Part shown: in pieces, positions 1-43,899 of the stretch
Position numbering within the stretch: the first letter of the stretch is position 1
Layout: every line of letters begins with the position of its first letter
Origin: Dendrobates tinctorius
Lineage: Eukaryota
Assembly (NCBI RefSeq): GCF_039654945.1
Contig: NW_027361751.1
Span: forward strand, 7,502,001-7,566,000
Reading direction: 5' to 3'
DNA: 64,000 nt
Position numbers and translations under genes: made by a program
The notes under the pieces: generated by a model
Databases searched by the model: none
Told to the model about the DNA's origin: nothing
What the model saw: only the letters and a program-made list of their open reading frames with translations

Positions 1-1090
1 CTTTGCCATGGCTGTGGTGTGTTCGCATTCCTTCTCTAGGGCCTCTATTTCTGCCCTTTTTTTTGCCTTTCTGTGCACTGCTTCGGCTGCCTCTATTTCC
101 ATTTCAGTTTTATTTAGAGCAAAGGCAGCTCGCATTTTCGTGGCCTCAGCTTCTGCACGTGCTCTTACGAGCTGTTCGCCTAGGGTTTAGGATTTTGAAG
201 AGCGTGACTTAGATCAGGGTTCCCCAACTCCAGTCCTCAAGGCCCACCAACAGATCATGTTTTCAGTATTTCCTTTGTATTGCACAGGTGATGCAATTAT
301 CACCTGAGCAATACTCAGGAAATCCTGAAAACATGACCTGTTGGTGGGTCTTGAGGACTGGAGTTGGGGAACCCTGACTTAGATGATCGCTTTGACTATC
401 TGGCTGAGCCAGAAATACAAGATGACATCTCGGCTATTAGCGCGATTCTTGCCTCTGTCTTGGCTTTTCTATCGCGCACTATGCTTTCTCTCTGAGAGTT
501 AAGTTGTTGGAAAGCTTGCAGCTCTTTGCAGGGAACTGACGGGTTAAGTCTCTGTAACACAGAGATGTACTGACCTGCTGTTTCTGCATACACTTGATAA
601 TCTGAACACAGTTGTGCAAGAGTTTCCTCTGGTGGTCGTTCGATAGAAGCAGGCTGAGACAGACTGTCTATGTGACTTAGCAGTTTTTGCCATAGCTCCG
701 CCATAGCATAGAGAAGATCATGTTTACTGGATTCTAGATTCTCCTTGACTTTCCATGTGGGCTTTGTGGGACGTCTAGCCTTCTCACTAGATAGTGGATC
801 AAGTTCTATGCACTCTTCCTCTAACAATGGGTCTGGCAGAGACCGTGTAGTCATTCCTTCAGCCATCTGATTCACATGGAGAAGGGGAGCTGTATAGTCT
901 CTTATATGCTGAGAGCGGATGCTCTGCAGGAAGTTCTGTAGCTTTATAGAAGCTGTGGGTGGCTTTACAGATGAATCTGGTGAGTCTTTTTTACTATTCT
1001 GTCCCCGGGGCCTGTGACTGCAAATATGGCTCGGTGAGATGCTGGATCTCTTCACCTTACTTACAATTGGCGACGGTCGCAGATAGCTTA
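1..1090 (-). mobile_element. Degenerate BEL/Pao-like LTR retrotransposon gag N-terminal region (runs off the left edge)
   Basis: ORF 396..1355 has RRPTKPTWKVKEN followed by a coiled-coil. After the MITE is removed it continues with an S/R-rich stretch and 'ARAEAEATKMRAAFA..EIEALEKE', as in the N-terminus of vertebrate BEL/Pao gag. Stops are present. Confidence 0.5.
215..376. mobile_element. hAT-type palindromic MITE (162 bp)
   Basis: Long TIRs CAGGGTTCCCCAACTCCAGTCCTCAAG...CTTGAGGACTGGAGTTGGGGAACCCTG; perfect 8-bp TSD ACTTAGAT (207-214, 377-384). Confidence 0.92.
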
Positions 1091-2349
1091 ACTCAGCTGC
1101 AGGCACACATGTTATGAAGAATCCAGAAGAGACCTTGATTTTTTTTAAGAATTCTTGTTGAATGCATACAAACAGGAGCAGGTAAAAAAGACTTTCTTCA
1201 GACAGGCTGAAAGCACATGTGCCTCTAATGAAGCCATGATGGAGACTGAGACACAGGGAGAAGAAGAAAGAAGTGACATCACACCTGAAGAGGGAGACAG
1301 GGAGACAGAAGGGACAAACTTCATGGAAAGGGAGGATTTCAGCTATGCATAACACTGGAATTCATAGCAACAATAAAAAAATATGAGTGACTGCAATACA
1401 GCATGTAAAATGTACAAGACAGTCTGTAAAATGTCTCATTCATGAGACATAGCAGAAGTGTTATAATAGAAGTGGCAGAGGATCACATTCGTTGAATTAC
1501 ATCTAACCTGCATGAGATTTTTTTTATTTTATTTTTTAAATAAATTGGTGAATGCGGGATAGTGTGAGGAGTCTTTATTCAAATAAAAAAACACTTTATG
1601 TGTGTATACTTTTATTTTTTATTATCGGGTTAGTAATGGGGGTGTCTGATAGACACCTCTCCAATACTAACCCCATGGCTTGATGGCAGTTATGATTTTT
1701 GACAAATCACAGCTGTCATCAACCCCAACTACCATAACCCTGATTGCCACTGGACCAGCGCAATCGGAAAAAATCAGGCAGAGCACCAGAATTGGCGCAT
1801 CTAATGGATGCACCAATCCTGGGGCAACTGTGGGCTTGTATTTTTAGGCTGGGATGGGCTCAATAACCATGGACCTTCCCAGTCTGATAATAAAAGCTCA
1901 CAGCTGTCTGATTTACCTTGGCTGGTTATCAAAAATAGGGGGGACCCAACATCATTTTTTAAAATTATTATCAGGGAGGAGGTAGTGTTTTTTTGTTTAT
2001 TTTTCTCTTTTTAATTTTGCCTTATATGCAAGTCATTATACAGGAAAGAATGTCTCTTAAAAATGTTTCCTGTAAAATCCATTTTATCTTCAGTTTTGTA
2101 TGTGACCTTGGAGTCAGAGATGCTTGCAGGTGTCTTCCCCATGCTGTTCCCATTCCATTTGAGAGCTGTTTCCATCCATTTTAGCTATTATCCTGCCTGC
2201 CAACTCTCCTGTTAGGGTCTTCTGGAAAGATGCTTGAGTTTCCCATTGATTTCCATTATATTCAGTAATTGAGTCAAGCCCATTTGAGCATCTGACCTGC
2301 TCGATTTGAGTACCAAGCACTTTAGCATTTTAGTGCTCAATCATCACTA

Positions 2350-4170: not shown

Positions 4171-5903
4171 TTTATGATCCATTTTGCACTCAGTGGGTCA
4201 CTCTCCGAAATTCTTAGAGATTATACTCTCTCAAAAACTTATCCTTTGGATAGGTGCTATAGATCTTCTTACCATTGTACTGCTGCCTCCTATTCAGGAT
4301 ACCAATAGTTCAGCTCTAAAACGATGAGGGATTAATCAGGAGGATTATTTTTTGTTTTATTTCATGGCATCTCTCCTTTTTCAGACACTTCTCACATCCC
4401 TTACATGCTGTTTGGTGGCTTCATCCACTTGGAAGCTCTAGGAATTTCAATGTGAATTGCAGTAGAAGTAAAGTTGAGCCATTTACTTCCTCACTGCTGA
4501 TGTCAAGTGCAGCAACAGATAAAGAGATTAAAAAAAAAATATGCAAAAATTTAATTACAAGCTGTTTTTGTGTTTGTAGAGTGAAATTGCTTCCTGAATA
4601 AAAGGTCTGTGATTGCAACAGCATCAGCAGGATTTCATGCATACAGTCTATGCTATATAAGAAAAACAAGAAAAAAGAATGAAAAAAAAAATATATGGGG
4701 GCAAATGAGATTACTTTTTGCAAAAATGATCCTTACAACAATATAAGAAATGGCAATGTGTATATAAGTAAATCAAAAAATAACATAATTGACAAACTTT
4801 GACTCTACCTTCTGATTTACTAATATTTGGACATTTGAATCTTTTTGTAAAAATCCTCTTCAACTATTACACTGATTCTTTAATTTCTTTGTTTTTCCAG
4901 CATCTTCTTTTCTCTGGATCAACATAATGGACATGTGTCTTTTACACCTATACTTGTTTTATAGATGGATAAAACAAAACAAATTGAATAATCAAATAGT
5001 GAAAAGAACTTGGATTTTTGTATGGTTTGTATAATGGCCTCCATTTGTAATGTAAGCCATGATGTTATTGTATGCTATGGGCAGGTATTTCAAGATAATA
5101 CTTTGCTATGATATTTTATGATTTAAGGAGCAAAAAAGTAGGTGATGCGGAAGAAGATACCGGTGGTATAAATGCGGCATGATAGATGGGGTGCACAAAG
5201 GCTTATTCTACACTGGGAGCAAAAAAATTCACTTTTTTGTCTGATCCAGCTATGACTCAAATATAATTATCTGGACAAGCATCAGATCAGTGAGAGCCTT
5301 GTCAGGGCATCAGTTTAGGCTTTTTAGCTTTCTGTAGTAAGGAATTTCATAGCAATGGAGAAAAGTCAATGAATCTCTTTTATTGAGATGTCAACAACAG
5401 GTAATTACAATATAAAGGTACAAGACAAACTGAAGCAAGTGGAGCAATGCATCACAATAATCACAATGTCACAATATTGAATTGTCAATATTGTGGAAAT
5501 AAATCTAACACTATGGAATCACGGCAGCAGTAAAGGGCATGTATAGGTGCAATTATGGAGTTCTCTCTTTTTAGCTCACAATCACTAGTATGAAACACAT
5601 ACTGTACCATGTCAGTAGCACATGTGTAAGGACAGCCACTGCTACGGGACCACCAGTTGTAGAAACATTGTTCCCCTATATCACCCAATTCCCCTCATGG
5701 CTGCTACATAGAGGAGGAAAAAAAAATCTTTGTAAAAATCTATGGCAATTTTGGAGAGTTACCGAGTCCTTTAAAGGGGGGTCATTCACCACCTTTAGTC
5801 TTCCATCTGTCAGGGTAGAACACAATATGCAAATCCTCCTTCCCTGGAGGAATATCTGGCTAGTCCCGTGTTTGAGACTCTTAAATGAGGCTCCACGGAC
5901 TTT

Positions 5904-5937
5904 ATTTGCATATTCGTATTTCCCAAGAAGCAATGCA
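5904..5937 (+). promoter_or_regulatory. Octamer (ATTTGCAT) plus adjacent SPH/Staf-like motif; snRNA-DSE-like element, repeated at 6300 and 6661
   Basis: Perfect octamers at 5904, 6300 and 6661, and an inverted one at 5827. The three forward copies are each followed by a TTCCCA....(G/A)CA(A/T)TGCA motif. Confidence 0.45.
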
Positions 5938-6062
5938 CCTACGATTTCACTGAGCGCCTTTGCGGCTGCCGCAGTGTTTTCTTTGACTGATCTCCCTGAG
6001 GTCAGTGATTGTTTCGTGATGTTGGTCTACTAGGCATTGCTCCCACCTAGCCAGAATCCTAC

Positions 6063-6106
6063 TCCACACTGATGAGGGGCAACACCCCAAAACAGCTGTC
6101 TGTGGA
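6063..6106 (+). ncRNA. Minimal type I hammerhead ribozyme, copy 1 (G12->A in the GAAA box)
   Basis: tccaca-CTGATGA-gggg caaca cccc-AAAAC-agct-GTC-tgtgga. Stem I tccaca/tgtgga, stem II gggg/cccc, palindromic stem III. Predicted cleavage after C6100. Confidence 0.8.
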
Positions 6107-6459
6107 TGGATACCTGGCCTTGGTATTTCCCTTGTCATATCTGTAAACTCGTAAAGAGTTGGATATTGACTTAAAGGGCCACTTAATATGGTGGTAATGG
6201 TGGCTTCCGAAAGGTGCCACTCCTTTGCTGGGTCCTTCCCTGGAGGAAGAACTGGCTAGTCCCGTGTTTGAGACTCTTAAATGAGGCTCCACGGACTTTA
6301 TTTGCATATTCGTATTTCCCAGGGAGCAATGCACCTACGATTTCACTGAGCGCCTTTGCCGGCTGCAGCAGTGTTTTCTTTGACTGGTCTCCCTAAGGTC
6401 AGTGATTGTTTTGTGATGCTGGTCTACTAGGCATTGCTCCCACCTAGCCAGAATCCTAC

Positions 6460-6502
6460 TCCACACTGGTGAGGGGCAACACCCGAAACAGCTGTCTGTC
6501 GA
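6460..6502 (+). ncRNA. Minimal type I hammerhead ribozyme, copy 2 (A6->G in the CUGAUGA box)
   Basis: tccaca-CTGGTGA-gggg caaca ccc-GAAAC-agct-GTC-tgtcga. Predicted cleavage after C6496, 396 nt after copy 1. Confidence 0.75.
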
Positions 6503-8369
6503 TGGATACCTGGCCTTGGTATTTCCCTTGTCATATCTGTAAACTCGTAAAGAGCTGGATATTGGTTTCCGAAAGGAGCCACTCCTTGGCTGGGTCCTTC
6601 CCTGGAGGAAGATCTGGCTAGTCCCGTGTTCGAGACTCTTAAATGAGGCTCCACGACTTTATTTGCATATTCGTATTTCCCAGGGAACATTGCACTTAGG
6701 ATTTCACTGATTGAGCGCCTTTGTTGGCTGCCGCAGTGTTTTCTTTGACTGGTCTCCCTGAGGTCAGTGATTGCTTCGTGATGAGGGTAGCACGATAGTG
6801 ATATCAGCATTCAGTCTGTTAGGTGCGTTTGTGTAGCAGTTGTGGAGAAACATACACCTTATGATATGTGCTATTCATAAGAAGGAGACCTCTCAATCCT
6901 GTCTGCGCTCTGGAGTCCATGGTAATCATGAGCTGCTGATTGACAGCTTTCTTCCTATGCACAGTAATAGCGAAAGAGCTGTCCATCATTACTGGTGAGT
7001 TGGGCTGGCCCTGCGGCTCACGAATTTCAAGAAAACACTGTATCTGATAAAGTGTAACAGATAAACATAATAGAAAGAAATCTGTGTGTCTGCCTCTACC
7101 TTAGAGAGGATAACATAAAGGTGGTGACAGATTCCCATTCATTTTTAACAGTATGCCACCTCTACTTCGCTGTTGAATTTTGGTATTTCTGAAGTGAACA
7201 GCCATCATGGGATTCCCATTTTCATAAGGTAGGGGTACAAGACATGACCTATGTGCAGTATACACTACCTACATAAATAGAGACTGTAGCAGCATTATTT
7301 TTATATGTATTTATGTATTTGTATATGTGTATTTTACGTATTAATAATAATCATATTTTTATGGCATTTTAGCTTGTCCTAGAGTCCTTCCTTCTGCAGT
7401 ATTGGTCTCTAGTTTATAAATACCACACACATTGCGGTTTAATATTTACTCAAACTAAGGAATTTTCCCAAAATACATAGAGAATGTGCCAGACAGTGTT
7501 CTAATTACACTTCTCTTCTGTACAGTGCCCTGGGTTTTCTATTAGCTCTATGGAGAAGTCAATAGATCGTCAGAGGGAAGGTATAACAGAACTGTACACA
7601 CACCTGGTGCTTGTGCCATAAGGGAAGGAAGTTATTGTGCCAAGCAAACAATGAAATAAAAGGCAGCTATCAGCGTACAATAAAGAGGTAACAGATCTAT
7701 GGAAACAGCGTAGATTACAGAAAATGATGTGTAATACATGTAAGCATTCACTATAACTGAACAGGATGAAGAGTATCAAGCCCTTTCTCTCCTGATCGTA
7801 CCCAAGGAGGGAAAGGCAGCACCAGGACCCATCAACAATGCACATTAGAGTATGTAAATGCCATGTATTGTTAGAGAATCTACTGTTAACGGGAATCTAT
7901 CACCCCCACCTGACAGCATAAAGTAAGCACAAAGTCTTGTAGGGGATATAACTCCTATACAAACCTCATCTTGAGGGCATATACATCGGACGAGTGCTAT
8001 TTGATGTTTTATCAGAGAGCACTCAAATCAATTTTATTGTATGGGGCAGAGAAGATCTGCGTCAATCGGATCACACACCCATTCAAGTCTATGGGTGCGT
8101 GTAACAGATTGGACTGCACTTGGATGTCCTCTGAGTACAGTTGTAAGGGGGTGAGATAGAATTACCTCCTTGCTTCCCTTCCTCTAATTTTTTTCAGTGT
8201 ATTGATGTTTACATGTGCTAATGTTGGTAATCCCCTATGTTAATATTTGTTGTACTGCTACATAGTAATATGTATTACCGCTCACATTTATGCTACTGCC
8301 ACATTCATACGTGTTACCATTGTTTGTAGAACTATGTATGTTATGTTGTGTTCCTTTAGTGTAATATTG

Positions 8370-14339: not shown

Positions 14340-17300
14340 CGTTTCGCCTTCTTTTTACTATCACCCCCATACTACTCTATTTCTCCCTAACTCCTGCCAT
14401 CCCTCCACCCAGTAAGGAACTTGTCATTTCCCCCTCCATTCTTTCCAGCCACCTCAACTGTTCCTCCACATACAATCCTTTTTCTTCAGACACACACGGC
14501 CACAACATGTCGTATCCTGCTCCCACCTTCTAATGCTCTGTCTACTACTCCTCATGGCTGGCGACGTATCCCCAAATCCTGGCCCTCCACAATACATCCC
14601 TACACTCACTTCTATCACCCTCCCATGATCCTCTACACATCTTCACAACCATGATAACCTCTTACCCATTCATCCAGCCCCCACTCCCCCAACCCCCTTA
14701 CCTGGAGCCCTATGGAACGCACGCTTTGTCTGCAACAAGCTGTCATTTATCCATAACCTCTTTATCACCAACAAACTCTCCTTCCTTGCCATCACTGAAA
14801 CCTGGCTCACTCCCTCTGACACAGCCTCTCCAGCTGTGCTTTCCTATGGCGGATTCCATTTCTCTCACATCCCTTGCCACAGCAACAAACGTGGTGGAGG
14901 AGTTGGCTTGCTCCTGTCTGATACCTGCTCCTTTACCCCAATTCCTCTGCCACCCTCCGCTACTCTTCCCTTGTTCCAGGTGCACTCCATCCGCATCTAT
15001 TCCCCCTCCAACCTCCAACTGGCTGTCATCTACCGCCCCCCAGAACTAGTCATCTCCACCTTTCTCGACCACTTCACCACCTGACAACTCCATTTCCTTT
15101 CTGCTGACATCCCCACCATCACCATGGGTGACTTCAACATCTCCATTGATACTTCCACCCCGGCTGCCTCTAAACTTCTATCGCTCACGGCTTCCCTCAG
15201 CCTCACTCAATGGTCCTCTGCGGCCACTCACAAAGATGGTCACACGCTGGACCTTATCTTCACCCACCTCTGCTCCCTCATTAATCTCAATAACTCACCC
15301 CTCCCCCTGACCACAACCTACTGACATTCTCTTCCCTCTCCCCTCCTACTGCGCAACCCCCGCTCCATAAACTCGCTCACCCTCGCAGGAATCTCAAACA
15401 CCTGAATTTACAATCACTCTCCAAGTCCCTTCTCCCTCTTACAGACATAGCTTCCCTTCATGACACAGATGCTGCTGCCACTTTTTACAACACCACAATA
15501 ACAGCAACACTTGATTCGGCTGCCCCCTTCATGCAGAGCAAAACTCGAACAATCAACAGGCAGCCCTGGCTGACCAGCCTGACCAAAGAACTGAGATGGG
15601 TTTTCAGGGCCGCTGAGTGGAGATGGAAGAGAACCCATTCTACTAAGCACTTCAGCGCATACAAGCAGTCCCTTGCCAGCTTCAAGTCCACACTCTCTGC
15701 CGCAAAACAAACTGACTTCGCATCTCTCATATCCTCCCTGTCTCACAACCCTAAACGGCTCTTCAACACTGTGAATTCTCTACTCCGTCCCACAGCACCT
15801 CCTCCCTCTCCTCTCATTTCTGCTGAAGACTTTCCCTCCTTCTTTAAGCAGAAGATCGACACGATCAGAAAAAATTTGGTCCGCAGCCCCCAATGCCCCT
15901 CTTAGCCGCTCAGCCCTGTTCTGCAAAAGCCAGCTTCTCCACCATGACAGATGATCAGCTCTCCATCCTTTTGTCAAGATCACACCTCACCACTTGTGCT
16001 CTTGACCCACTCCCGTCCCACCTCATCCCTAACTTGGCCACAGTCTTCATCCCATCTCTAACACACCTCTTCAACCTTTCACTTACAAATGGTATCTTTC
16101 CCTCATCCTTCAAACATGCCTCAATCACACCCATCTTCAAAAAGCCCTCCCTTGACCCATCCTCTGTGTCTAACTATCGCCCGATATCTCTTCTCCCGTA
16201 CACCTCAAAACTACTGGAACAGCATGTATATCTTGAAGTGTCCTAATGTCATGTGCCCCATCCTGTGTGACACGGCCAGCAGGCCGATAACTAATACAAC
16301 AGGACATGGCACGTGTAATTATCAAGTGTGACATGGCCCATAGGCCGGTAATTAATACAACAAGACACAGGGAATAGGGAAACATTTACAACGGTGGGCC
16401 CTGCGATAGGGAACGGGGGATGTGGAGACCTCCTGCACTCCCCTAAGTCAGTGTCCCTAACACTCCTAACGTTCCCTATACAGGCTTCTCACCCGTCGCT
16501 GATCAGGATACCTGTCACCCTAGCACACCCTACACCTATTCCTTACTAGGGAGCTGGGTGGTGCAGGCACTGGCCCCACCGCTATACTAACACCAACATG
16601 AGGAAAAGTGACAAACAGGGAAACACTTAGCTTTGCTCTGATGCACTTGCTCCTGGCAACAGAATCCAACACCGGAGGGCATCTTCCTCCCACCATGTCC
16701 AACACCTGGGTGCAGCTTTACAGCAACAGCGTCCAGTACCCGAGTGCCACCTCGGAGCAACAGAGTTCAGCACCTGAGTGCAGCTGTCCAGCAAAGGAGT
16801 CCAGCACCTGAGTGCAGCTGTCCAGCAACGGAGTCCAGCACCTGAGTGCAGCTTCCAGCAACGGAGTCCAGCAACTGAGTGCAGCTCTACACCATAGCTG
16901 CCACTCCACCAAGCTTTGCAAGAATTCTTCACTGACACCATAGCTGCCACTCCACCATGCTTTACACGAACTCCTCGCTGACACCATAGCTGCCACTCCA
17001 GGACTCTGACTGAGCTGCCCTGGACTCTCCTCAGCTAATTCCTTCACCCAGGATGCTTGGAAAAGATCAACAATATCACCAACGTGAGCACAACTGACAC
17101 ACCTTTATTGAGTAAACACACCTGTTAGTGATTCCCGTGCAATTACACTAACCACCACCGGGGGCAAAACTATTTCTAAAAACACCAGTACAATGACCAT
17201 ACTGGCCACCGGGGGCTAAACTATCTCTAACCACAAAGCTTAGGGAAAGGGAAAAAAAAGGTTACCAGTGCTCTTATCTGACATGATCCAGCATGGATCA

Positions 17301-18789
17301 TGACACCTCCCACCTCTCCTCCTGTTCCCTCTTTGACCGGTTACAATCTGGCTTCCGCCCGCATCACTCAACTGAAAATGCCTTAACTAAAGTCACTAAC
17401 AACTTACTAGCCGCCAAGAGCAAGCGACACTACTCTGTCCTCCTTCCCCTGGACCTGTCCTCTGCCTTCGACACCGTAGACCATTCCCTCCTGCTACAGA
17501 CTCTCTCATCTCTTGGCATCACAGACTTGGCCCTCTCCTGGATCTCATCATACCTAACAGACCGAACATTTAGTGTCTCCCTCTCACACACCACCTCCTC
17601 ACCTCGCCCCCTGTCTGTCAGTGTTCCTCAAGACTCTGTCCTAGGACCCCTACTATTCTCCATCTACACCTTCGCCTTGGGACAGCTCATAGAATCCCAT
17701 GGTTTGCAGTATCACCTCTACACCAATGACACGCAGATCTACCTATCTGGACCCGACCTCACCTCCTTACTGACTGAAATCCCACAATGTCTGTCTGCTA
17801 TCTCAGCCTTCTTTTCTTCTCGCTTTCTCAAACTGAACATGGACAAAACAGAATTCATCATCTTTCCCCATCTCACTCTACCCCTCCACAAGACCTATCC
17901 ATCAATGTCAATGGCTGCTCTCTTTCCCCAGTCCCGCACGCTCGGTGCCTTGGGGTGATCCTCGACTCTTCGCTCTCTTTCAAACCACATATCCAAGCCC
18001 TCGCCTCCTCCTGCCACCTCAAACTCAAAAATATTTCCCGGATCCGCTCATTCCTCAACCACGAAACCACAAAAACACTAGTGCATGCTCTTATCATCTC
18101 CCGCCTTGACTACTGCAATGTCCTTCTCTCTGGCATCCCCTCTAGCACTCTGGCACCACTCCAGTCCATCCTACACTCTGCTGCCCGACTAATCCACCTG
18201 TCTCCCTGCTATTCCCCAGCCTCCCCCTATGCCAGGCCCTTCACTGGCTTCCTATTGCTCAGAGGCTCCAATTCAAAACCCTAACCATGACATACAAAGC
18301 CATCCACAACCTGTCTCCTCCATACATCTGTGACATGGTCTCCAGGTACCTACCAGCATGCAACCTTCGATCGTCTCAAGATTTCCTTCTCTACTCTTCC
18401 CTTATCTCTTCTTCCCACAACTGCATACGAGACTTCTTCCGTGCTTCCCCCATACTCTGGAACTCTCTGCCGCAACACATGAGACTCTCACCATCAACAG
18501 AAACCTTCAAGAAGAACCTGAAGACCCACCTGTTCTGACAAGCCTACAGCCTGCAATGATCCTCGGTCTACTGAACCACCACACGACCTGCTCTACCCTC
18601 TCCTACTGTATCCTCACCCATCCCTGTAGACAGTGAGCCCTCTCGGGCAGGGTCCCCTCTCCTTATGTACTTGTGTGTCCCTTGTCTTATACATGTTTAT
18701 TATACTTGTCTATATTTCCCCTTTTCACATGTAAATCACCATGGAATAAATGGCGCTATATAAATGCATAATAATAATAAAATAATAAT
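14340..18789 (+). mobile_element. L2 LINE (degraded EN-RT), split by a solo LTR
   Basis: APE motifs WNAR..CNK, AITETWL, MGDFN, HTLDL; RT motifs [38 protein letters not shown]; SRLDYCN. L2-type 3' end GGCGCTATATAAAT(AAT)n. Confidence 0.93.
16247..17305 (-). mobile_element. Solo LTR (same family as 10450-11281) inserted in the L2 RT
   Basis: TGTCA...TGACA termini; the L2 frame EQHVYLEVS|..[10 protein letters not shown] resumes afterwards; imperfect TSD CCTAA/CCTCC; internal ~33-bp and ~48-bp tandem expansions at 16745-17000. Confidence 0.85.
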
Positions 18790-21319: not shown

Positions 21320-24300
21320 TCATGTATTATCCGATCTCTCACCTCGAGGATTATCCCCCAGATATCTAGTCCACGGGGCCCAGGTCGACACATAAGATTT
21401 GTGATTGAAGATCTCCCAGCTAGACAGCTCCTCCAGACGAGAAATCTGATTTATCTTAACATGCCACTCCTCCAATGTGGGGGGAGCGACATCTTTCCAA
21501 TGTACAGCTATCAGTTGTTTTGCAGCACTTAGCATCAATGGGAGTAGGCCATGTTTTTTTGGTAAGAAATCCTTTGATGGACACGAAAGAAGAACCTCCA
21601 TAGCCCTGAGATTAGTCTTTATTAATTGCAATTTCTTAAGAACTAGCTCGACACCGTCCCAAAAATGTCTCAATTTGGGACAATCCCAGAATATGTGTGT
21701 ATGATGTCCTCCAGAGTTGAGGCATCTCCAACAAGCATCATTATCAGCAAGACCCCTCTGTAAGAGCTTTGCGGGAGTCCAATGCCACCTGGTCAATATT
21801 TTATAAGAATTTTCTTGCAAAAGAACACACCTGGAGAATCCCCGTGCACTAGATAGCATTCTAGATACTTGTTTCTCTGTGAACGTAGTATTAAGTTCCA
21901 TTTCCCAGGAGTAAATAAATGAGGGCTTAAAATGTACTCCCGGAGAGATCAGATGTGAGTAAATACGAGACAAGATTTTCGGCCGTGGAAGCGGGAGTTT
22001 GATCATGATATCTAACCAGGACCAGTTCGATTTGGTCGGGAATTTCTTCTTAAATTGTAGAAGCGTACGTCGAATGTGCTGGCACTGAAGAAAATTAGTT
22101 GGTTGACTCATTGCATTTGATGGCCAAACTCCTCCCTGTAATATTTTATTACCGTAAAAGCTATTCAATGTATCTCTAGGGAGGGTAGACCATAGATTAT
22201 AAGGATCCTGAAAATCAAAATCCAATAGAAACTGTATTGAGCTAATCGGCGTTAATGTCGAAGGAAAAGTGTCCTCCGGTAATTCCCCCAACATCGATCT
22301 TTTGATACGTAATGTAGTAGAAGTTATCTCGTCCAGTCTAAGAGTAACCGGTGGTTTAGCCCTAGTCCAGAGATAAGGCAAACCCCTCGGGCCCAGTAAA
22401 GCCAGGTCGACACAAGCTCCCTCCCCACCCTCAGTGCAAGACACCACCTTTAACCATCTGCCAAGGTGGATTGCTTTATAATATAATAGGGGGTCTGGAA
22501 CTCCCAATCCACCAGAGGAGACTGGGTAAGTAAGAAGCCTATAAGGCAACCTAGCCGGTTTAGATTTCCAGATAAATTTTCCTATTAGTGACTTTAATGA
22601 CCCGAAAAAGGTCAGGGGTATCTGAATCGGTACCATATTCATGACATACAAAATGATAGGCATGATATATGCCTTAAACACGTTGATGCGACCCAACCAA
22701 GATAAAGTGGGTAGGTTATATTTATGCATCAGATTGGTAACTTTCTTCAATAAGGGTATGAAATTACTTTGAAATAAGTTAGTGGGGTCCCTAGTTATGA
22801 ATATTCCTAAATATTTAATAGAGCCATTAGCCCAAGAGGAGGGAATCTGTGTACGAAGAATGGAAAGTTGGGAATGAGGGAGAGTGATATTTAACGCTTC
22901 AGATTTGGCTAGGTTAATTTTAAAATTGGAAAGGGAGCCAAACTGTTGAAAAATTCGGAGGATGATCGGGAATGCCTGAGATGGGTTGGATATGAGGAAA
23001 AGCAAATCATCTGCGAAAGCTAGCGTTTTAAATGTCCCCGGGCCCACCGACAACCCCTCTATGCGTTGTTCTTGTCTGATGCTTTGTATCAAAGTTTCTA
23101 TAACTAAAATGAACAAAGATGGGGACAAAGGGCATCCCTGCCTAGTCCCATTGTGAATTTCCAAACTTTTTGATAGGGTGCCATTTATCCTGACCCTGGC
23201 CGTCGGTTGGGAGTAGAGAGAGAGGACTGCTGTTATATATTGAGGAGGGAAGCCGAATTTAATCAACACCTGCTCCATGAATCTCCAGCACACTCTGTCA
23301 AAAGCCTTCTCGGCATCCGTTGACAAGAGTACCAAGGGGACCTGCCGGGTTTTGGCAAACATTATAGACTGTATGACCCTAGTGGAGTTATCTTTCCCTT
23401 CCCTACCCCTCACAAAGCCCGCCTGATCCGCATGAATCAATTTGGGTAAAAAGTAGCTTATTCTACCCGCTAGTATTTTAGCCCACAGTTTTATGTCTGC
23501 ATTAAGTAATGAGATTGGTCTATAGCTGGTGCACAAGTTGGGGTCCTTACCCTCCTTCGGGAGAACCGTAATATATGCCTCCAGTGATTGCTTAGGGGGA
23601 AGCTGGCCTTTCAAATAGGAATTAAACAAGGTCACCAATTGAGGTAAGAATGATTTTATAAACTTTTTATAATATATAATGGGGAGACCATCCGGGCCTG
23701 GGGCCTTTCCATTTGGAATGGTGGAAAGAGTATCCAAAATTTCTTTAGGGGTAACCGGAGCAGTTAACAAAGTTTGGCCTTCCGGGGTAATTTTAGGTAA
23801 AACTAGTGGAGTCAGGAACGCTCTAATTTTTTCTATAGCTTTTATTGGATCTTGCATACTATCTGGTATGCTTAGATTATATAAGCTGTCATAAAAGGAT
23901 CTAAACTCCTCGGCAATGTCAGCGGTCTCGAAAATTGAGGAGCCATCCAGAGTTTTGAGTTGCCTAATAAACGTCCTTTCCTGCTGCTTTTTAAGCAATG
24001 AAGACATAAGCTTACTGCTTTTATTGCCATGGAGATAGAACCTCTGTTTGCATCTCATATAGGTTTTGGCCGATTGGATATTTAAAAGATTTTTTAGCGA
24101 ATTTCTTAGGTCCGTCAGTTCAGTTAGTATCTTAATTACTTGAGATCTCTTATGCAATCTTTCCAAGGAATTAATTTGGTGCAAAATAGACACAACCTGT
24201 TTTGTCCTTTCTTTTTTGAGATGGGAACTCAAAGCTATAAATTCTCCCCTCATTACCGCTTTATGTGATTCCCACACCACAGGTATGGGTGGGCCAGAGT

Positions 24301-25147
24301 GCAAATTTGTCTGAAAAAAGAATTCAAGAGTGTCAGTCAGTTTCGTAATGTGGGAATCTGAATCTAATAATGTCTCATTAAGTGACCATGACCTGGCTGG
24401 TCGCGGAAGGGTTTCTATGCCTATGTCGAGAAAAATAGGCGCATGGTCCGATAGTGAGATAGCGTCTATGGTCGCATTTTTGACTAATGAGAGGTTGGTT
24501 GTTTGTATCAATATATAGTCAATTCTATGATAGCTACCACACGGATGGGAATAAAAAGTGTAGTCTCTGCCCGAAGGAGAGAGTGTCCTCCAGGGGTCTA
24601 TCAAGTGTAATTCTTGGAAAGAAAGGTGTAGTTTTCGCAGTGCCTTTTGAGAAAGGGTCGACTTGCCCGTGGAAGTATCCAAAGATGGATTAAGTGGTAC
24701 ATTAAAATCTCCCCCCATCAGCAATAAACCCTCAGTAAATAGTTTTAAGGTATTCATTGTTTTGCACAGCCATCTAATCTGATTCTTGTTTGGGGCATAT
24801 AAGTTACATAGGGTAACTTTGGTATTGGCAATAAGGCCCTTCAGTATAATATACCTTCCTTCGGAATCTGAAAGGCAATCATGCAAGACAAAAGGAACAT
24901 TTTTTTTAATAGCAATACTCACTCCTCTAGACGCCGACCCACCTGTACTATGATACCAGGTCGGGTAACGAGATCTGGACATGTCTGGTACTCTCCCCGC
25001 TTTAAAATGTGTCTCCTATAGAAAGACCACACTAGCCTTTTTTGCATGCAGAAGGTTCAATACCTGATTTCTCTTACACGGGGAGCGTAGCCCCTTTACA
25101 TTATACGAAGCCACTACTATAGTGGCAAAATTTTCCTTGTCACCCAT
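21320..25147 (-). pseudogene. L1 ORF2p (APE endonuclease, RT, C-terminal Cys/His), single premature stop at codon 44
   Basis: ATG at 25147 gives MGDKENF..SYNVKGL..VFL*ETH (TAG at 25018-25016). Then 1220 aa are open from 24982: GGDFN, SDH, YRPISLLN, GTRQGCPLSP, FADD, CWRC..H..W.C. Confidence 0.95.
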
Positions 25148-29137: not shown

Positions 29138-30960
29138 ATATAAAGCGGTACAGAATTGTGGAGAGCTTTGTGGGTGAGAGAGATGAGTTTATACTGGACC
29201 CTGAAGTGAATAGGTAGCCAGTGTAATGACTGGCACAAGATGGAGGCATCGGTGAAGCGGCTGGACAGAAATATGACCCTGGCTGCCGCATTCAAGATGG
29301 ATTGGAGAGGAGAAAGTTTGGTAAGAGGGAGACCGATCAGAAGAGAGTGGCAGTAGTCCAGACGAGAATGAATAAGAGCGACAGTAAGAGTCTTAGCAGT
29401 TTCAAAGGAGAGAAAAGGTCGAATTTTGTAGATGTTCTTAAGATGCAGGTGACAAGAGCAAGTGAGTGATCGGATATAGGGAGTAAAGGAAAGTTTGGTG
29501 TTGAATATGACCCCAAGACAGTGGGCATGCTGCTTGGGAGATAACCCCTCCAGGGTTATTTTGATGTTAGGTAGAGTGAGGTTAGTAGAGGGGAGAAACA
29601 CAAGACATTCTGTTTTGGAGAGATTTAGTTTCAGATGGAGGACATGATGTTAGAGACAGAAGACAGACAATCCTTGGTATTTTGAATTAGGGTAGGGGTG
29701 ATATCAGGGAAGAAGTCTATTATTTCGTGTCATCAGCATAGAGATGATACTGGAACCCAAATCTGCTGATTGTTCTTCCAATAGGGGCAGTGTATAGAGA
29801 GAAGAGGAGGGGGTCTAGGACTGAGTCCTGCGGGACCCCGATAGTAAGGGGATGAGGAGAGGAAGAGGAGCCGGCAAAAGATACAGTGAAGGAGCGGTCA
29901 GAGAGGTAGGAGGAGAACCCGGAGAGTTCTGTGTCCTTGAGGCCTATAGAGCGGAGCATAGTGAGGAGGAGCTGGTGATCCACAGTGTCAAATGTGGCAG
30001 AGAGATCCAGGAGAATCAGCAGGGAGCAATGACCTTTCGATTTAGCTGAAAGGTGCGATTTCAGCTCCGGAGCCCGCACCAAACAAGGGGAGTCCGACAT
30101 CGGCATACTATTATGCCGGTTGGTGGAAAGTGGTTAAAAAAAGATCTGCAACAGCTGAAGTATATATTATTCTTTTACGCATCATAGGAACTGTTTAATC
30201 ACACAACTTATTGTTATAGAGGTTGTCCGGCCATGTAATATTGATGACCTATCTTAGAGATTGGTCATCGATATTAAATCGGTGACACTCATCACCCCAT
30301 AGGGTCAGCTGTTACCACCTCTGGTGGTGACGAATAGGAAATAATCTGCAGTACCCATTAGCGGCTTCGGCGCAGAGCTTTGCTGATGTTCTCCATTTAA
30401 TGTCAGGGGACAGGAAACAGCTGATCAGTGGGGGTGCCATGTGTCAGACCCAACTATCCTTGACAAATCCTAAGGACTCATGCAACATAACTGTTTAAAT
30501 CGGACAAGTGCTACCCATGGTCGCACTCATGCTATTCTATGGGGCTGTGCACATATCCGATTATTTTCTTGGAACTGAGTGATCGAGGAAAAAAATCATT
30601 GACGTGTTCGACTTTGATCTAGGTGTTGAATCAAATGCAAGTCTACAAGTCCATAGAAAACATCCGACTGCACTGAGATATTATCCAAATGTGGTCCAAT
30701 TTCAAGGGCTGATGGCATGGAGAGGGTGGAAAAACTTTTTTTTTCTTTCCACTCTGATCAGAGTCAGAATAACATAATCGGACCAGTTTTCTCAGATGGA
30801 GAGAAAACGATCGTTACCCTAGCCTAAAGAAAAGGCATCAAGATGACCATTTGAAAAAATAGACTCTTCAATAAAAGAAACATTACATGTCAGTGCTTGG
30901 TACAAGAGAAAAAATATTCTGAGGAGGCAGACTCCAGAAGAAAAAGTTGAGCAGTATCTA

Positions 30961-39604: not shown

Positions 39605-42197
39605 TTAGACCTAATACTATCTAACAGACCTGACAGAATAACAAATCTGCAGGTCGTCGAGCATCTAGGAAATAGCGACCACAATATTGTACAGTTTAAC
39701 TTGTCTTTCGCTAGGGGGACTTGTCAGGGAGTCACAAAAACACTGAACTTTAGGAAGGCAAAGTTTGACCATCTTAGAGATGCCCTTAATCTGGTTGACT
39801 GGGGCAATGTCTTCAGAAATAAGAATACAGAAAATAAATGAGAAATGTTTAAGAACATCCTTAATAGGCACTGTAAGCAGTTTATACCTTGTGGGAATAA
39901 AAGGACAAGAAATAGGAAAAACCCAATGTGGCTAAACAAAAAAGTAAGAGGGGCAATTAACTGTAAAAAGAAAGCATTTAAACTACTAAAGCAGGATGGC
40001 ACCGTTGAAGCTCTAAAAAACTATAAGGAGAAAAATTCTTTATCTAAAAAAATAATGAAAGCTGCCAAAAAGGAAACAGAGAAGCACGTTGGTAAGGAGA
40101 GTAAAACTAATCCCAAGCTGTTCTTCAACTATATCAATAGTAAAAGAATCAAAAGTGAAAGTGTAGGCCCATTAAAAAATTGTGAGGAAAGTATGGTTGT
40201 AGATGATGAGGAAAAAGCTAATATATTAAACACCTTCTTCTTCATGGTATTCACGGTGGAAAATGAAATGCTAGGTGAAATGCCAAGAGACAAAGAAAAC
40301 CCTATATTAAGGGTCACCAATCTAACCCAAGAAGAGGAGCAAAACCGGCTAAATAAGATTAAAATAGATAAATCTCCGGGTCCGGATGACATACACCCAC
40401 GAGTACTAAGAGAACTAAGTAATGTAATAGACAAACCATTATTTCTTATATTTAGAGACTCTATAGCGACGGGGTCTGTTCCACAGGACTGGCGCATAGC
40501 AAATGTGGTACCAATATTCAAAAAGGGCTCTAAAAGTGAACCTGGAAATTATAGGCCAGTAAGTCTAACCTCTATTGTTGGTAAAATATTTGAAGGACTT
40601 CTGAGGGATGTTATTCTGGATTATCTCAATGAGAATAACTGTTTAACTCCATATCAGCATGGGTTTATGATGAATCACTCCTGTCAAACCAATCTAATCA
40701 GTTTTTATGAAGAGGTAAGCTATAGACTGGACCAAGGTGAGTCATTGGATGTGGTATATCTTGATTTTTCCAAAGCGTTTGATACCGTGCCACACAAGAG
40801 GTTGGTACACAAAATGAGAATGCTTGGTCCGAGGGAAAATGTGTGTAAATGGGTAAGCAACTAGTTTAGTGGTAGAAAGCAGAGGGTGGTTATAAATGGT
40901 ATATTCTCTAACTGAGTCGCTGTGACCAGTGGAATACCGCAGGGGTCGGTGTTGGGACCTATTCTCTTCAACATATTTATTAACGATCTGGTAGAAGATT
41001 TGCACAGTAAAATATCGATATTTGCAGATGATACAAAACTATGTAAAGCAGTCAATACAAGAGAAGATAGTATTCTGCTACAGATGTATCTGGATAAGTT
41101 GGGAACTTGGACCAAATGGTGGCAGATGCTGTTTAACAATGATAAATGTAAGGTTATACACATGGGAAGAAGGAATCAATATCACCATTAGAGATGACCA
41201 ACTTTGCCTTTTTTTGGGTCGAGTCGGATTTCACGAAACCCGACTTTCGCAAAAGTCGGGTCGAACGAAATCGGCCAATTATTGTGAAAAGTCGAAGTCC
41301 TACTGAAACACGAAACCCAATGTAAGTCAATGGGGAAGAAAAGTCGGCAGTGAGTGGAGGACAGGAAGCACACCTAGAGTGCCCATTTTAATGCCAAAAA
41401 CATCAATTCTTATTCCTTAAGCTTGTCAACCTTAATTTACTTTATAATAATAGTTAGGCATTGAAAACTGGAGGTTATTTGGCTAAAGTTGTGGGGGGGT
41501 AGTGCTGGCTCCAGATTTTCGTGGGTTCAGGGCCAAAGAGTGTTACTGGGCTCCTTTAACACATGACACAATTCATGATCCTTTGATACGGCAGAGAAAT
41601 AGCGGTACAGTACAATGAAAAATACTTCAATTCTTACATCACATGACTGATATCCATTTTAAATTCTCCAATAGCTCCAAAAACAGACAGAGTATTCCTC
41701 CATACAGTATTATGGCCACTGCATTGTGCGCCATACAGAGTAATGAGGCCCATATATTTCTCCATACAGAATCATTGGTCCCATATAATGTTTGAAACAG
41801 TATATGATGAGCTCCACATAATGCTACAGTATATGTTGTTCACCATTGATGAAGCTCCAGTGTCTTATGGGCCCAAATAATGCTCCACATATAATGGGCC
41901 CCATTTCTAATGCTCCAGTGTATAATGGGCCCTGTAAATGGTGCTCCAGTGACTGATGTCCACCTTTGGAATGCTCCAGTGTATGGTGGGCCCCAGATAT
42001 CATTCTCCAGAGTATCGTGCTCCCCAAAAATTGCTCCCAACATTTAAAACAATTAAATAAGTCTCCTCGCTAAGGAATCCCTGTACTCTGGACTCCTCAT
42101 CGTCCCCATATTCCATCTCTCTGCACTTGGACTGTTTAGGCAGAGGGCGTACAGACGTGATGTCATCGCGCTCTTTGACCAGAATGTCACTGTCAGG

Positions 42198-42613
42198 AAA
42201 AGTGTTTGGTTTCCGGGGCCAGTATGGTTGCAAAGCTGAACCTTAAAGGAATGTCCAGAAGGGCATGACCAGGAGTGGAGCCTGCGGCTTAATTGGACTC
42301 CACACGGGCAACATCAACCATGCCATCCACAAAAAAGCTGCACAGATTGCAAGCTTAATTCCGTTAATGAGCGAGACTCAGGCATGCCCCCGCGGTCCGC
42401 GTCCAGCTTACTAGAGGGACACGCGAGGCTCTGGCACGCGAGATCGACCAATAACAGGTCTGTCATGCCCTTACATGTCCGGGGCTGCACGCGTGCTGCA
42501 ATGAAGGGACCAGCGTGTATCGCTTACAAGTGCGGATAACACGCTGAACCCCGTTAGTGATGGGGATTACAATTCTTCCCCGCGAACAAGCATTTCCCAG
42601 TAAGTGCAGGTCA
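42198..42613 (+). pseudogene. Degenerate 18S rRNA fragment (3' major domain) with an internal deletion
   Basis: AGTATGGTTGCAAAGCTGAA.CTTAAAGGAAT..., CCAGGAGTGGAGCCTGCGGCTTAATT.GACTC, CAATAACAGGTCTGT.ATGCCCTTA.ATGTCCGGGGCTGCACGCG and TTCCCAGTAAGTGC.GGTCA match conserved eukaryotic 18S segments in order. Confidence 0.9.
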
Positions 42614-43899
42614 ACCGTAATTCCGGAATTAGGCCTAAACGGCATTCCAGAAAGAATGTGAAAAAATTAAGTGTCCAAACCACAGGTGCTGTAGCTTGCT
42701 TAACAGCTGGGCTCCTCTGCTGAGTAGCACACAGTTCTTATATAAACACGCGGCATAGCTTGGTTCTCGGGTGGCCAACTCTGCTGAGTAGCATACACAG
42801 TTACTAGGCCCAAAGTATTAAGTGGTGTAAATGCAGTCAAAAACTGGTTCTTTCATAAAAAACGGATTAAAAACATATTAAAAACATATATGTGACATGC
42901 ACAAGTGTGAACAAGTTGGTCAGACAATGCTCACACCACCCAATGGCTGAAACACAACAAGAAAACACAAAATGACAAATTTGCAAAAATACTCTGCAAT
43001 AAAAAACATGATAATAATCAGCAAGTGCTGTATAGCAAATACAGGGTATTTAGTCAATACGTTTTTTGCAAAAAATGTATACCAAGCCGCTTCACCACGT
43101 CACGGTAACCCTTCACGAAGCAGTCCCTATCTAATGTATTTAAAACCTGAACATGTGAACAGTGTCTAAATGAACAGGATACAGACAGGCGCCTCCTAGT
43201 ATATGGGCTTGTGGTGTAAGACAGGCGGCATAGCTCAGTTCACGGGTGGACTCCTCTTCTGAGTAGCAGACACAGTTACTAGGCCCAAAAGGATTTTCAG
43301 AACAATAAGCGGTAAAAATTATTAGAAACACACACAGCGTAGCTCCTTCACAGGTGTACTACACCGCTGGCTACCATACACCGCTAATATGCCCTAAAAC
43401 TGTCTATTATCATTGAAAACCATTATTAATGTGAAAAAAAATATGCTTTTGTTTAACGAAACATTCTAGAACGGAAACTCGAACAGCCGAATTTTAATCA
43501 AAGTGTTGTAGTTCGACGAACGGATCTAACACCGCCCAAAACAGCTAGAATTTGAACTTGGCCAACAGTTCCACTCAATCACAACTCATCTGTAATCAGG
43601 AGGCAGACTCAGACGGTTTCAGGCACAGTATGGATTCGACAAGATTGCAGAAAGTTGAGAAAGGGTAGATTATCACTGGATAACAGGTATACAGTATATA
43701 GCATAGTTTAAACATTTAAAATCTCCGTGTTTATTTACGGAGTCCGACAAATACACTCACAGCCTCAATATGGATTAGACAACAATCTAAAATGTAGAAA
43801 AAAGGAAATGTTTTTGATGCGTACACCAGTATACACTGTTAGGGTATTTTTAAATCTTCATACTGTATATATTTCTGTCTCAGTAAGACAGACCAGACT

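Follow-up and report, generated by a model that had tools for sequence, protein, structure and literature searches.

A Decayed Hammerhead-Bearing Tandem Repeat, Probably a Retrozyme Insertion, in the Frog Dendrobates tinctorius

Introduction

What is the short tandem repeat at positions 5835-6783 of a 64,000-nucleotide (nt) stretch of the Dendrobates tinctorius genome (NCBI RefSeq assembly GCF_039654945.1, contig NW_027361751.1, 7,502,001 to 7,566,000 of the forward strand; hereafter the window), and could the hammerhead ribozymes written in it still cut? A preliminary description, made from the letters of the window, had seen in this repeat a candidate self-cleaving retroelement of the retrozyme or satellite 2 type. 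Here we report that both ribozymes are mutated and that the locus is a decayed member of the non-long-terminal-repeat (non-LTR) retrozyme kind. The repeat at 5835-6783 probably goes back to a single insertion, now old and inactive, of a non-LTR retrozyme of the satellite 2 kind: a tandem retroelement that bears hammerheads, does not code for protein, and exists in very high copy number.

The kind has already been described in amphibians, from newt satellite 2 (1987) through the hammerheads of Xenopus tropicalis and the retrozymes of the axolotl to the families of Xenopus. For X. tropicalis, hammerheads associated with repeats were described in 2011 (PMC3088659) and again in 2014, when ~9,000 minimal motifs were counted (PMC4209133); axolotl retrozymes and their circular RNAs followed in 2020 (PMC7229834). 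Most recently, non-LTR retrozymes were found in all seven of the seven amphibians sampled, with 57 families in Xenopus (Li, Clavereau & Pollet 2026, bioRxiv 10.64898/2026.07.22.740005; hereafter Li et al. 2026).

Results and Discussion

Comparison of unit 1 with the 64-kb window by blastn delimits a head-to-tail array at 5835-6783 that holds 2.4 units, all on the forward strand: unit 1 at 5835-6232 (398 nt), unit 2 at 6233-6594 (362 nt; aligned by blastn as 6233-6583 plus a short tail to 6594, 94.0% identical to unit 1 and 94% in the MAFFT alignment as well), and a partial unit 3 at 6595-6783 (189 nt, 91.1%). The repeat search and the MAFFT alignment agree with blastn, which bears out the earlier count of ~2.5 tandem units of ~396 bp, and no further copy of the unit was found by blastn elsewhere in the 64 kb. 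Tandem Repeats Finder at default settings does not report the array. Both MAFFT and blastn place a gap in unit 2, from which 34 nt near the end of unit 1 are missing. The array begins ~131 nt downstream of a unit's cut site and is therefore 5'-truncated. At its other end, unit 3 stops at the equivalent of unit 1 place 6021, without a hammerhead and 77-79 nt short of the place for a third ribozyme cut site. Pfam gives no match for any of the overlapping open reading frames (ORFs), which are 147, 127, 91, and 85 aa long, in keeping with the absence of coding capacity noted before, and the GC content of the array is 0.48-0.49. Non-LTR retrozymes are recognized as head-to-tail, non-coding repeats of ~150-450 bp that lack LTRs and have a GC content below 50% (PMC7229834; Li et al. 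2026), and the array, with a 396-nt unit in 2.4 copies, has each of these properties.

The motif of unit 1, at 6063-6106, reads directly as tccaca-CTGATGA-gggg(caaca)cccc-AAAAC-agct-GTC-tgtgga. All of it fits a type I hammerhead except the A at 6089, where the invariant G12 is needed. Helix I has 6 bp, helix II 4 bp, and helix III 2 bp with the palindromic tetraloop AGCU; past its first 6 bp, helix I goes on through a 3x1 internal loop (UAC/U), 4 bp, a 1x2 loop, and another 5 bp, an extension that RNAfold recovers. With this extended helix I, hammerhead 1 spans 6050-6118 (+ strand), with its core at 6069-6100 and the predicted cut after C6100, and its architecture is the canonical metazoan type I form as defined in PMC4209133, in which an open-ended helix I of ~6 bp joins a 4-bp helix II and a helix III of 1-2 bp capped by a palindromic loop of 2-4 nt. 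Hammerhead 2 (6447-6514, + strand, predicted cut after C6496) carries three defects in its motif at 6460-6502: A6 is changed to G at 6469 (CTGGTGA), helix II is cut to 3 bp (ccc-GAAAC), and a C-C mismatch stands in helix I at 6500 (tgtCga). The invariant core (C3-U4-G5-A6-N7-G8-A9, G12-A13-A14, U16.1-H17) is broken in both genomic copies, and both hammerheads are dead. The two predicted cut sites are spaced by 396 nt, so that an intact copy would release a 396-nt monomer equivalent to 6101-6496 (+ strand). Because both cores are mutated and each active site of a double hammerhead needs one complete core, the locus should not release this monomer by self-cleavage.

Several points of the preliminary description stand on this direct reading, namely the cut sites at 6100 and 6496 with their 396-nt spacing, the further extension of stem I, and a palindromic stem III (the stretch ACAGCUGU at 6092-6099 is self-complementary). 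Others require amendment. The label of a "minimal" hammerhead does not suit unit 1, which has the canonical form and not that of the minimal hammerhead ribozymes (min-HHR) of Penelope repeats. One core mutation per copy is correct for unit 1, where it is G12A; unit 2 has three defects. A hammerhead-like motif does occur in each full unit, but the complete hammerhead that had been given as a two-copy "consensus" is a hybrid across a 1-nt indel.

We asked how often such a motif would arise by chance with a descriptor of our own, which comprises the core, a helix I of at least 5 bp, a helix II of at least 3 bp, a helix III with an A-U closing pair and no fewer than 2 bp, and H17. A scan of the window finds unit 1 with one core mismatch, while unit 2 fails the descriptor. 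Across 60 dinucleotide-preserving shuffles of the window, a match without mismatch never occurred, and when one mismatch was allowed the rate was 0.017 per window. A second match with one core mismatch lies in a T-run at 30709-30743 (+ strand) and shows that low-complexity DNA yields false ribozyme matches. Weak Rfam matches to Hrs13, mir-296, SNORD65, HOTAIR_2, and UCA1 were set aside as chance.

Hammerhead 1 folds in RNAfold at -27.7 kcal/mol (z -3.1), whereas hammerhead 2 reaches a z of only -1.3. The 396-nt monomer (6101-6496) is predicted to fold at -138.5 kcal/mol with a z of -3.06, none of 100 shuffles being as stable; stable folding of this sort has also been reported for retrozyme circles. 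When two unit 1 ribozymes are folded together by RNAcofold, the minimum-energy structure is a double hammerhead (-62.9 kcal/mol, versus -55.4 kcal/mol for two monomers) in which both helices I form in trans, each molecule keeps its helix II hairpin, and a single helix III of 8 bp is shared. Two copies are therefore predicted to pair as a double hammerhead via the self-complementary ACAGCUGU.

If the copy in the window is broken, is the family broken too? To address this, contigs of four public runs (X1, X5, X15, and X17) from three organisms were aligned on 5600-7000 at 85% likeness; all 24 runs considered are contig sets (Logan), none of them on record as RNA. We use "family majority" for the per-place majority letters of the aligned contigs, and the summed depths given here are not copy numbers. 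The family is clearly very abundant: in X1, probably from the source organism, the unique flanks have a word depth of 7-8, compared with 10^4 to 4.9x10^5 summed over the repeat. Across the four runs, the family stands at summed depths that exceed those of the flanks by a factor of thousands. The X1 peak falls at 6070-6116, on the ribozyme, and the peak of all four runs is on the ribozyme module. At place 6089, 565,208 of 580,164 depth in X1 (~97%; 74 contigs) is G and ~2.6% is non-G, and the share is similar in X5, X15, and X17. In the best-covered bin there is no variant at or above 10% in 6069-6075 (CUGAUGA) or in 6090-6105 (AAC, helix III, GUC, and helix I); the one other majority difference within the motif is in loop 2, where C at 6083 becomes T. 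These counts support a family majority with an intact core that includes ccccGAAAC, and the earlier expectation of a decayed locus within an intact family is upheld. As G12 lies in a CpG (C11.1 and G12 of ccccGaaac), its change to A in unit 1 is the expected methyl-CpG decay. One X17 contig ends exactly at 6100, although the end of a contig is not that of an RNA.

For many contigs, the likeness to the unit is confined to 6067-6114, beyond which they enter unlike sequence. This 48-nt ribozyme module is common to at least one other abundant family, the flanks of which are complementary to each other. The consensus of the loose ends before 6067 terminates in ...AUCUCA-UGC-UUUG and that behind 6102 begins with CAAA-U-UGAGAU...; since the agreement is ~0.7, both strings are approximate. 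In this second family, helix I would be UUUGCA/UGCAAA in place of the UCCACA/UGUGGA found here, so that three pairs differ in both of their bases. The 3x1 internal loop comes next, as in the unit here, and then another helix; when joined, the sequence is predicted to form a single long helix I about a core that is the same. Helix I thus appears to covary, to the approximation that these strings allow, between families that share one catalytic module. Helices II and III show no variation among the contigs from which covariation could be read.

These results bear on the proposal that the motif is a chance resemblance within an ordinary repeat and was never a ribozyme. The proposal would account for a core that is broken in both genomic copies and for the failure of any Rfam hammerhead model to score either of them, and the window does contain one clear false positive at 30709. 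We nonetheless regard it as highly improbable, given the expectation of 0.017 per window, the family majority that restores the core, a helix I that covaries between two families alike in their internal loop, and the palindromic helix III region with its predicted double-hammerhead fold.

Each unit also contains an octamer, ATTTGCAT, which is exact in all three (5904-5911, 6300-6307, and 6661-6668, + strand) and lies 196 nt upstream of the cut site in unit 1; by itself, an 8-mer would be expected to occur 4.3 times per window. The family majority of the organism labeled A retains the octamer, and the contigs of that organism have no variant at or above 10% in it. The preliminary description had joined an SPH-like element to this octamer, and here the two part ways: the SPH/Staf consensus matches unit 1 only and with 3 mismatches, and the 16 matches to it in the window, against 19 expected, are at chance level. 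A small nuclear RNA (snRNA)-type promoter within a unit would pair the octamer with a proximal element, and in newt satellite 2 one of this type, used by RNA polymerase II, has been reported (Coats 1994, as cited in PMC2220036).

How the array came to lie here is suggested by its ends. Directly after unit 3, the 10 nt at 6784-6793 (AGGGTAGCAC) match those at 5812-5821 (AGGGTAGAAC) in 9 of 10 places, and this pair, for which no strand is assigned, is the best 10-mer match between the flanks. Between the left member of this candidate target-site duplication and the array sits an 11-nt piece on the reverse strand, AATATGCAAAT (5824-5834), the exact reverse complement of 5904-5914 with the octamer included; an inverted match of at least 11 nt was obtained with 5 of 2000 shuffled flanks. 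There may thus be a 10-bp target duplication and an inverted 5' piece at the insertion, for which the support is modest. Where non-LTR retrozymes have target-site duplications, these are longer than 4 bp (PMC7229834; Li et al. 2026). Penelope-type insertions are marked by tandem units, by truncation at the 5' end, and by a short 5' copy in inverted orientation, and they often have an inverted 5'-truncated copy alongside (PMC8557442), and the AATATGCAAAT piece resembles such a copy. At the 3' side, likeness to the unit also breaks off at places 6022 and 6027 in contigs from two other runs, close to the 6021 at which unit 3 ends. These are only four contigs, and they hint at a fixed 3' terminus near unit place 6021. 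An internal start of reverse transcription has been shown in vitro for a Penelope element of the anole (PMC11167929).

With the ends in view, a purely local origin can be weighed. A single ribozyme monomer might have landed here and been amplified in place by unequal crossing-over or slippage, as a minisatellite, in which case the array would have no bearing on rolling-circle reverse transcription. Units that differ by 6-9% and by a 34-nt indel would suit such a history, and local expansion of repeats of this type is discussed by Li et al. 2026. But the 3' end of the array coincides with the place at which other copies end, and the family is dispersed at very high depth. One event of insertion would also suit the incomplete units at either end of the array, the inverted piece, and the candidate duplication. 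A minisatellite is, in our judgment, quite improbable.

A second alternative grants the insertion and disputes the family: the units could be pseudo-LTR or untranslated-region pieces of an autonomous Penelope-like element, and the locus a truncated partial tandem of that element instead of a member of a separate retrozyme family. Such pieces have clear affinities with what we see, in that almost all retrozyme families of Xenopus have a Penelope pseudo-LTR as their sister (Li et al. 2026), Penelope insertions are tandem or inverted and 5'-truncated (PMC8557442), an 11-nt inverted piece stands at the 5' end here, and opposite-strand joints are present in the X5 contigs. We consider this alternative unlikely all the same. 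There is no ORF between or beside the 2.4 units, and ORFs of at least 70 aa within 2.5-10.5 kb have no reverse transcriptase or GIY-YIG match in Pfam; without a meaningful Pfam match in this interval, and with the nearest reverse transcriptase more than 4 kb away, the element does not adjoin a Penelope copy that codes for protein. Immediately behind unit 3, the element is closed off by the candidate target duplication, and the hammerhead has the canonical architecture and not that of min-HHR, which lack helix III and have a helix II of 7-8 bp.

Returning to a retrozyme insertion as the preferred reading, we can outline how it might have formed from what has been published on axolotl, newt, and Penelope-like elements. 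Intact arrays would be transcribed as multimers, in which neighboring ribozymes would pair via helix III and cut after GUC. A Penelope-like reverse transcriptase would then copy the circle or the multimer from a fixed internal start. The resulting cDNA would be longer than one unit, its 3' end always at the same place and its 5' end at random; ~10 bp of the target would be duplicated, and at times a short piece would stand inverted on the 5' side. By analogy, we infer that an enzyme of this type mobilized the element, which would agree with the literature, with the candidate target duplication, and with the tiny inverted piece at the 5' end.

A number of observations weigh against the reading of an old insertion from a family with working ribozymes. 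First, an intact motif is no proof of activity, since eight of nine Xenopus retrozyme dimers were inert in vitro and only one cleaved (Li et al. 2026). Second, neither copy scores with the Rfam hammerhead models, whether at gathering thresholds, at E values up to 10 on 1.2 kb, or on 86-nt slices. Third, contigs that best fit the ribozyme of unit 2 (6446-6492) have a depth of ~10^2 to 10^3 in X1 versus 8 at the flanks, and no variant row occurs at 6469 among the contig variants; the unit 2 version, with A6 changed to G and a 3-bp helix II, may be present in many copies and not be private to this locus. Fourth, the 6-9% difference between the units of the array points either to an old insertion or to a heterogeneous multimer, in place of one circle, as the template. 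Fifth, two putative RNA runs hold the repeat without its flanks, and low-coverage DNA would look alike. Finally, the candidate target duplication is imperfect and modestly significant, with 10 of 500 shuffles reaching the match between AGGGTAGAAC and AGGGTAGCAC. The flanks also share TTCCATCTGTCAGG (5801-5814) and TTCAGTCTGTTAGG (6810-6823), alike in 11 of 14 places, and this likeness means that the host flank may itself be repetitive, which slightly weakens the target-duplication call.

Among known systems, the non-LTR retrozymes of Xenopus, together with the repeat-associated hammerheads of X. tropicalis (PMC3088659, PMC4209133), are likewise from a frog; their tandem units do not code for protein, measure a few hundred bp, and each contain a type I hammerhead. 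The retrozymes of Li et al. 2026 have a mean unit of 316 bp in amphibians, 75% of the families have at most 7 units, and they are intergenic and Penelope-linked; the array here is similar. In contrast to the Xenopus elements, the 396-nt unit is not tied to a named family. We compared the primers of Li et al. 2026 (Supplementary Table 7) with the unit; the best match was 10 of 19-20 places, a value that 12-30 of 300 shuffles reached, and in one pair the two primers matched a single strand, which leaves no credible tie to a tested family. Under the rule of the same authors, which asks for two consecutive complete motifs, our locus would count as inactive.

The ribozyme itself is much like those of newt satellite 2 and the axolotl hammerheads HHR_Amex1 and HHR_Amex2 (PMC7229834), which are of type I with a very short helix III and a palindromic tetraloop. 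The newt satellite and the axolotl retrozymes also share with our unit an internally looped, extended helix I and an octamer, and their efficient cleavage is confined to dimers. Nearest to the hammerhead here is HHR_Amex2, which likewise has a tetraloop on a stem of 2 bp and needs to be dimeric to cleave well (PMC7229834). These repeats are ~330-350 nt long and come from salamanders, whereas the unit here is 396 nt and from a frog; the two are likened by their architecture, and ours is known from DNA alone.

The min-HHR of Penelope elements (PMC4209133) resemble the hammerhead here in their type I topology, in dimeric action via palindromic positions, in their tandem or inverted insertions, and in occurring in the same host genomes. 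They differ in having neither helix III nor loop 3, a helix II of 7-8 bp, and a helix I of 4-5 bp; in addition, they have an extra base before stem II and flank an ORF for a reverse transcriptase-endonuclease, and neither holds here. Schistosoma Sm-alpha and cave-cricket pDo500 are also tandem, non-coding repeats in which a type I hammerhead processes multimeric transcripts. Unlike our unit, they are found in invertebrates and have a more stable helix III and cut as monomers (PMC7229834), and Sm-alpha has an RNA polymerase III promoter.

Farther from the array in the window, an uninterrupted 1220-aa ORF on the reverse strand (21320-24982) encodes an APE endonuclease and a reverse transcriptase, with a weak zf-RVT match. 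The APE endonuclease identifies it as a long interspersed nuclear element, which may still be intact. Reverse transcriptase fragments (RVT_1) were found on the forward strand at 17293-17958 (E 1.5e-24) and 39845-40864 (E 2.5e-12), together with a fragment of eukaryotic 18S rRNA at 42216-42640 (+ strand; Rfam SSU_rRNA_eukarya, 88.9 bits, model 1118-1666, with internal deletions). A 319-aa ORF at 396-1355 (- strand) has a weak ECSIT_C match (E 0.0024, below the Pfam cut-off) and may be a host exon or chance.

Conclusions

The locus is an ordinary one, a single dead copy in a very large family of a known kind. It serves as a worked example of how genomic copies decay at the C11.1-G12 CpG while the family majority stays intact, and of one ribozyme module common to repeat families with co-varying helix I. 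The ends of the insertion hint at where reverse transcription starts. It is possible, and we put it forward as a tentative idea that is more doubtful than not, that frog retrozyme RNAs are copied from a defined internal start, which would leave a fixed 3' terminus, and that the conserved octamer could mean an snRNA-type promoter of their own. To our knowledge, such a promoter has never been tested in frog retrozyme units. If true, the fixed 3' terminus would provide the first mechanistic, as opposed to phylogenetic, link of retrozymes to the Penelope machinery.

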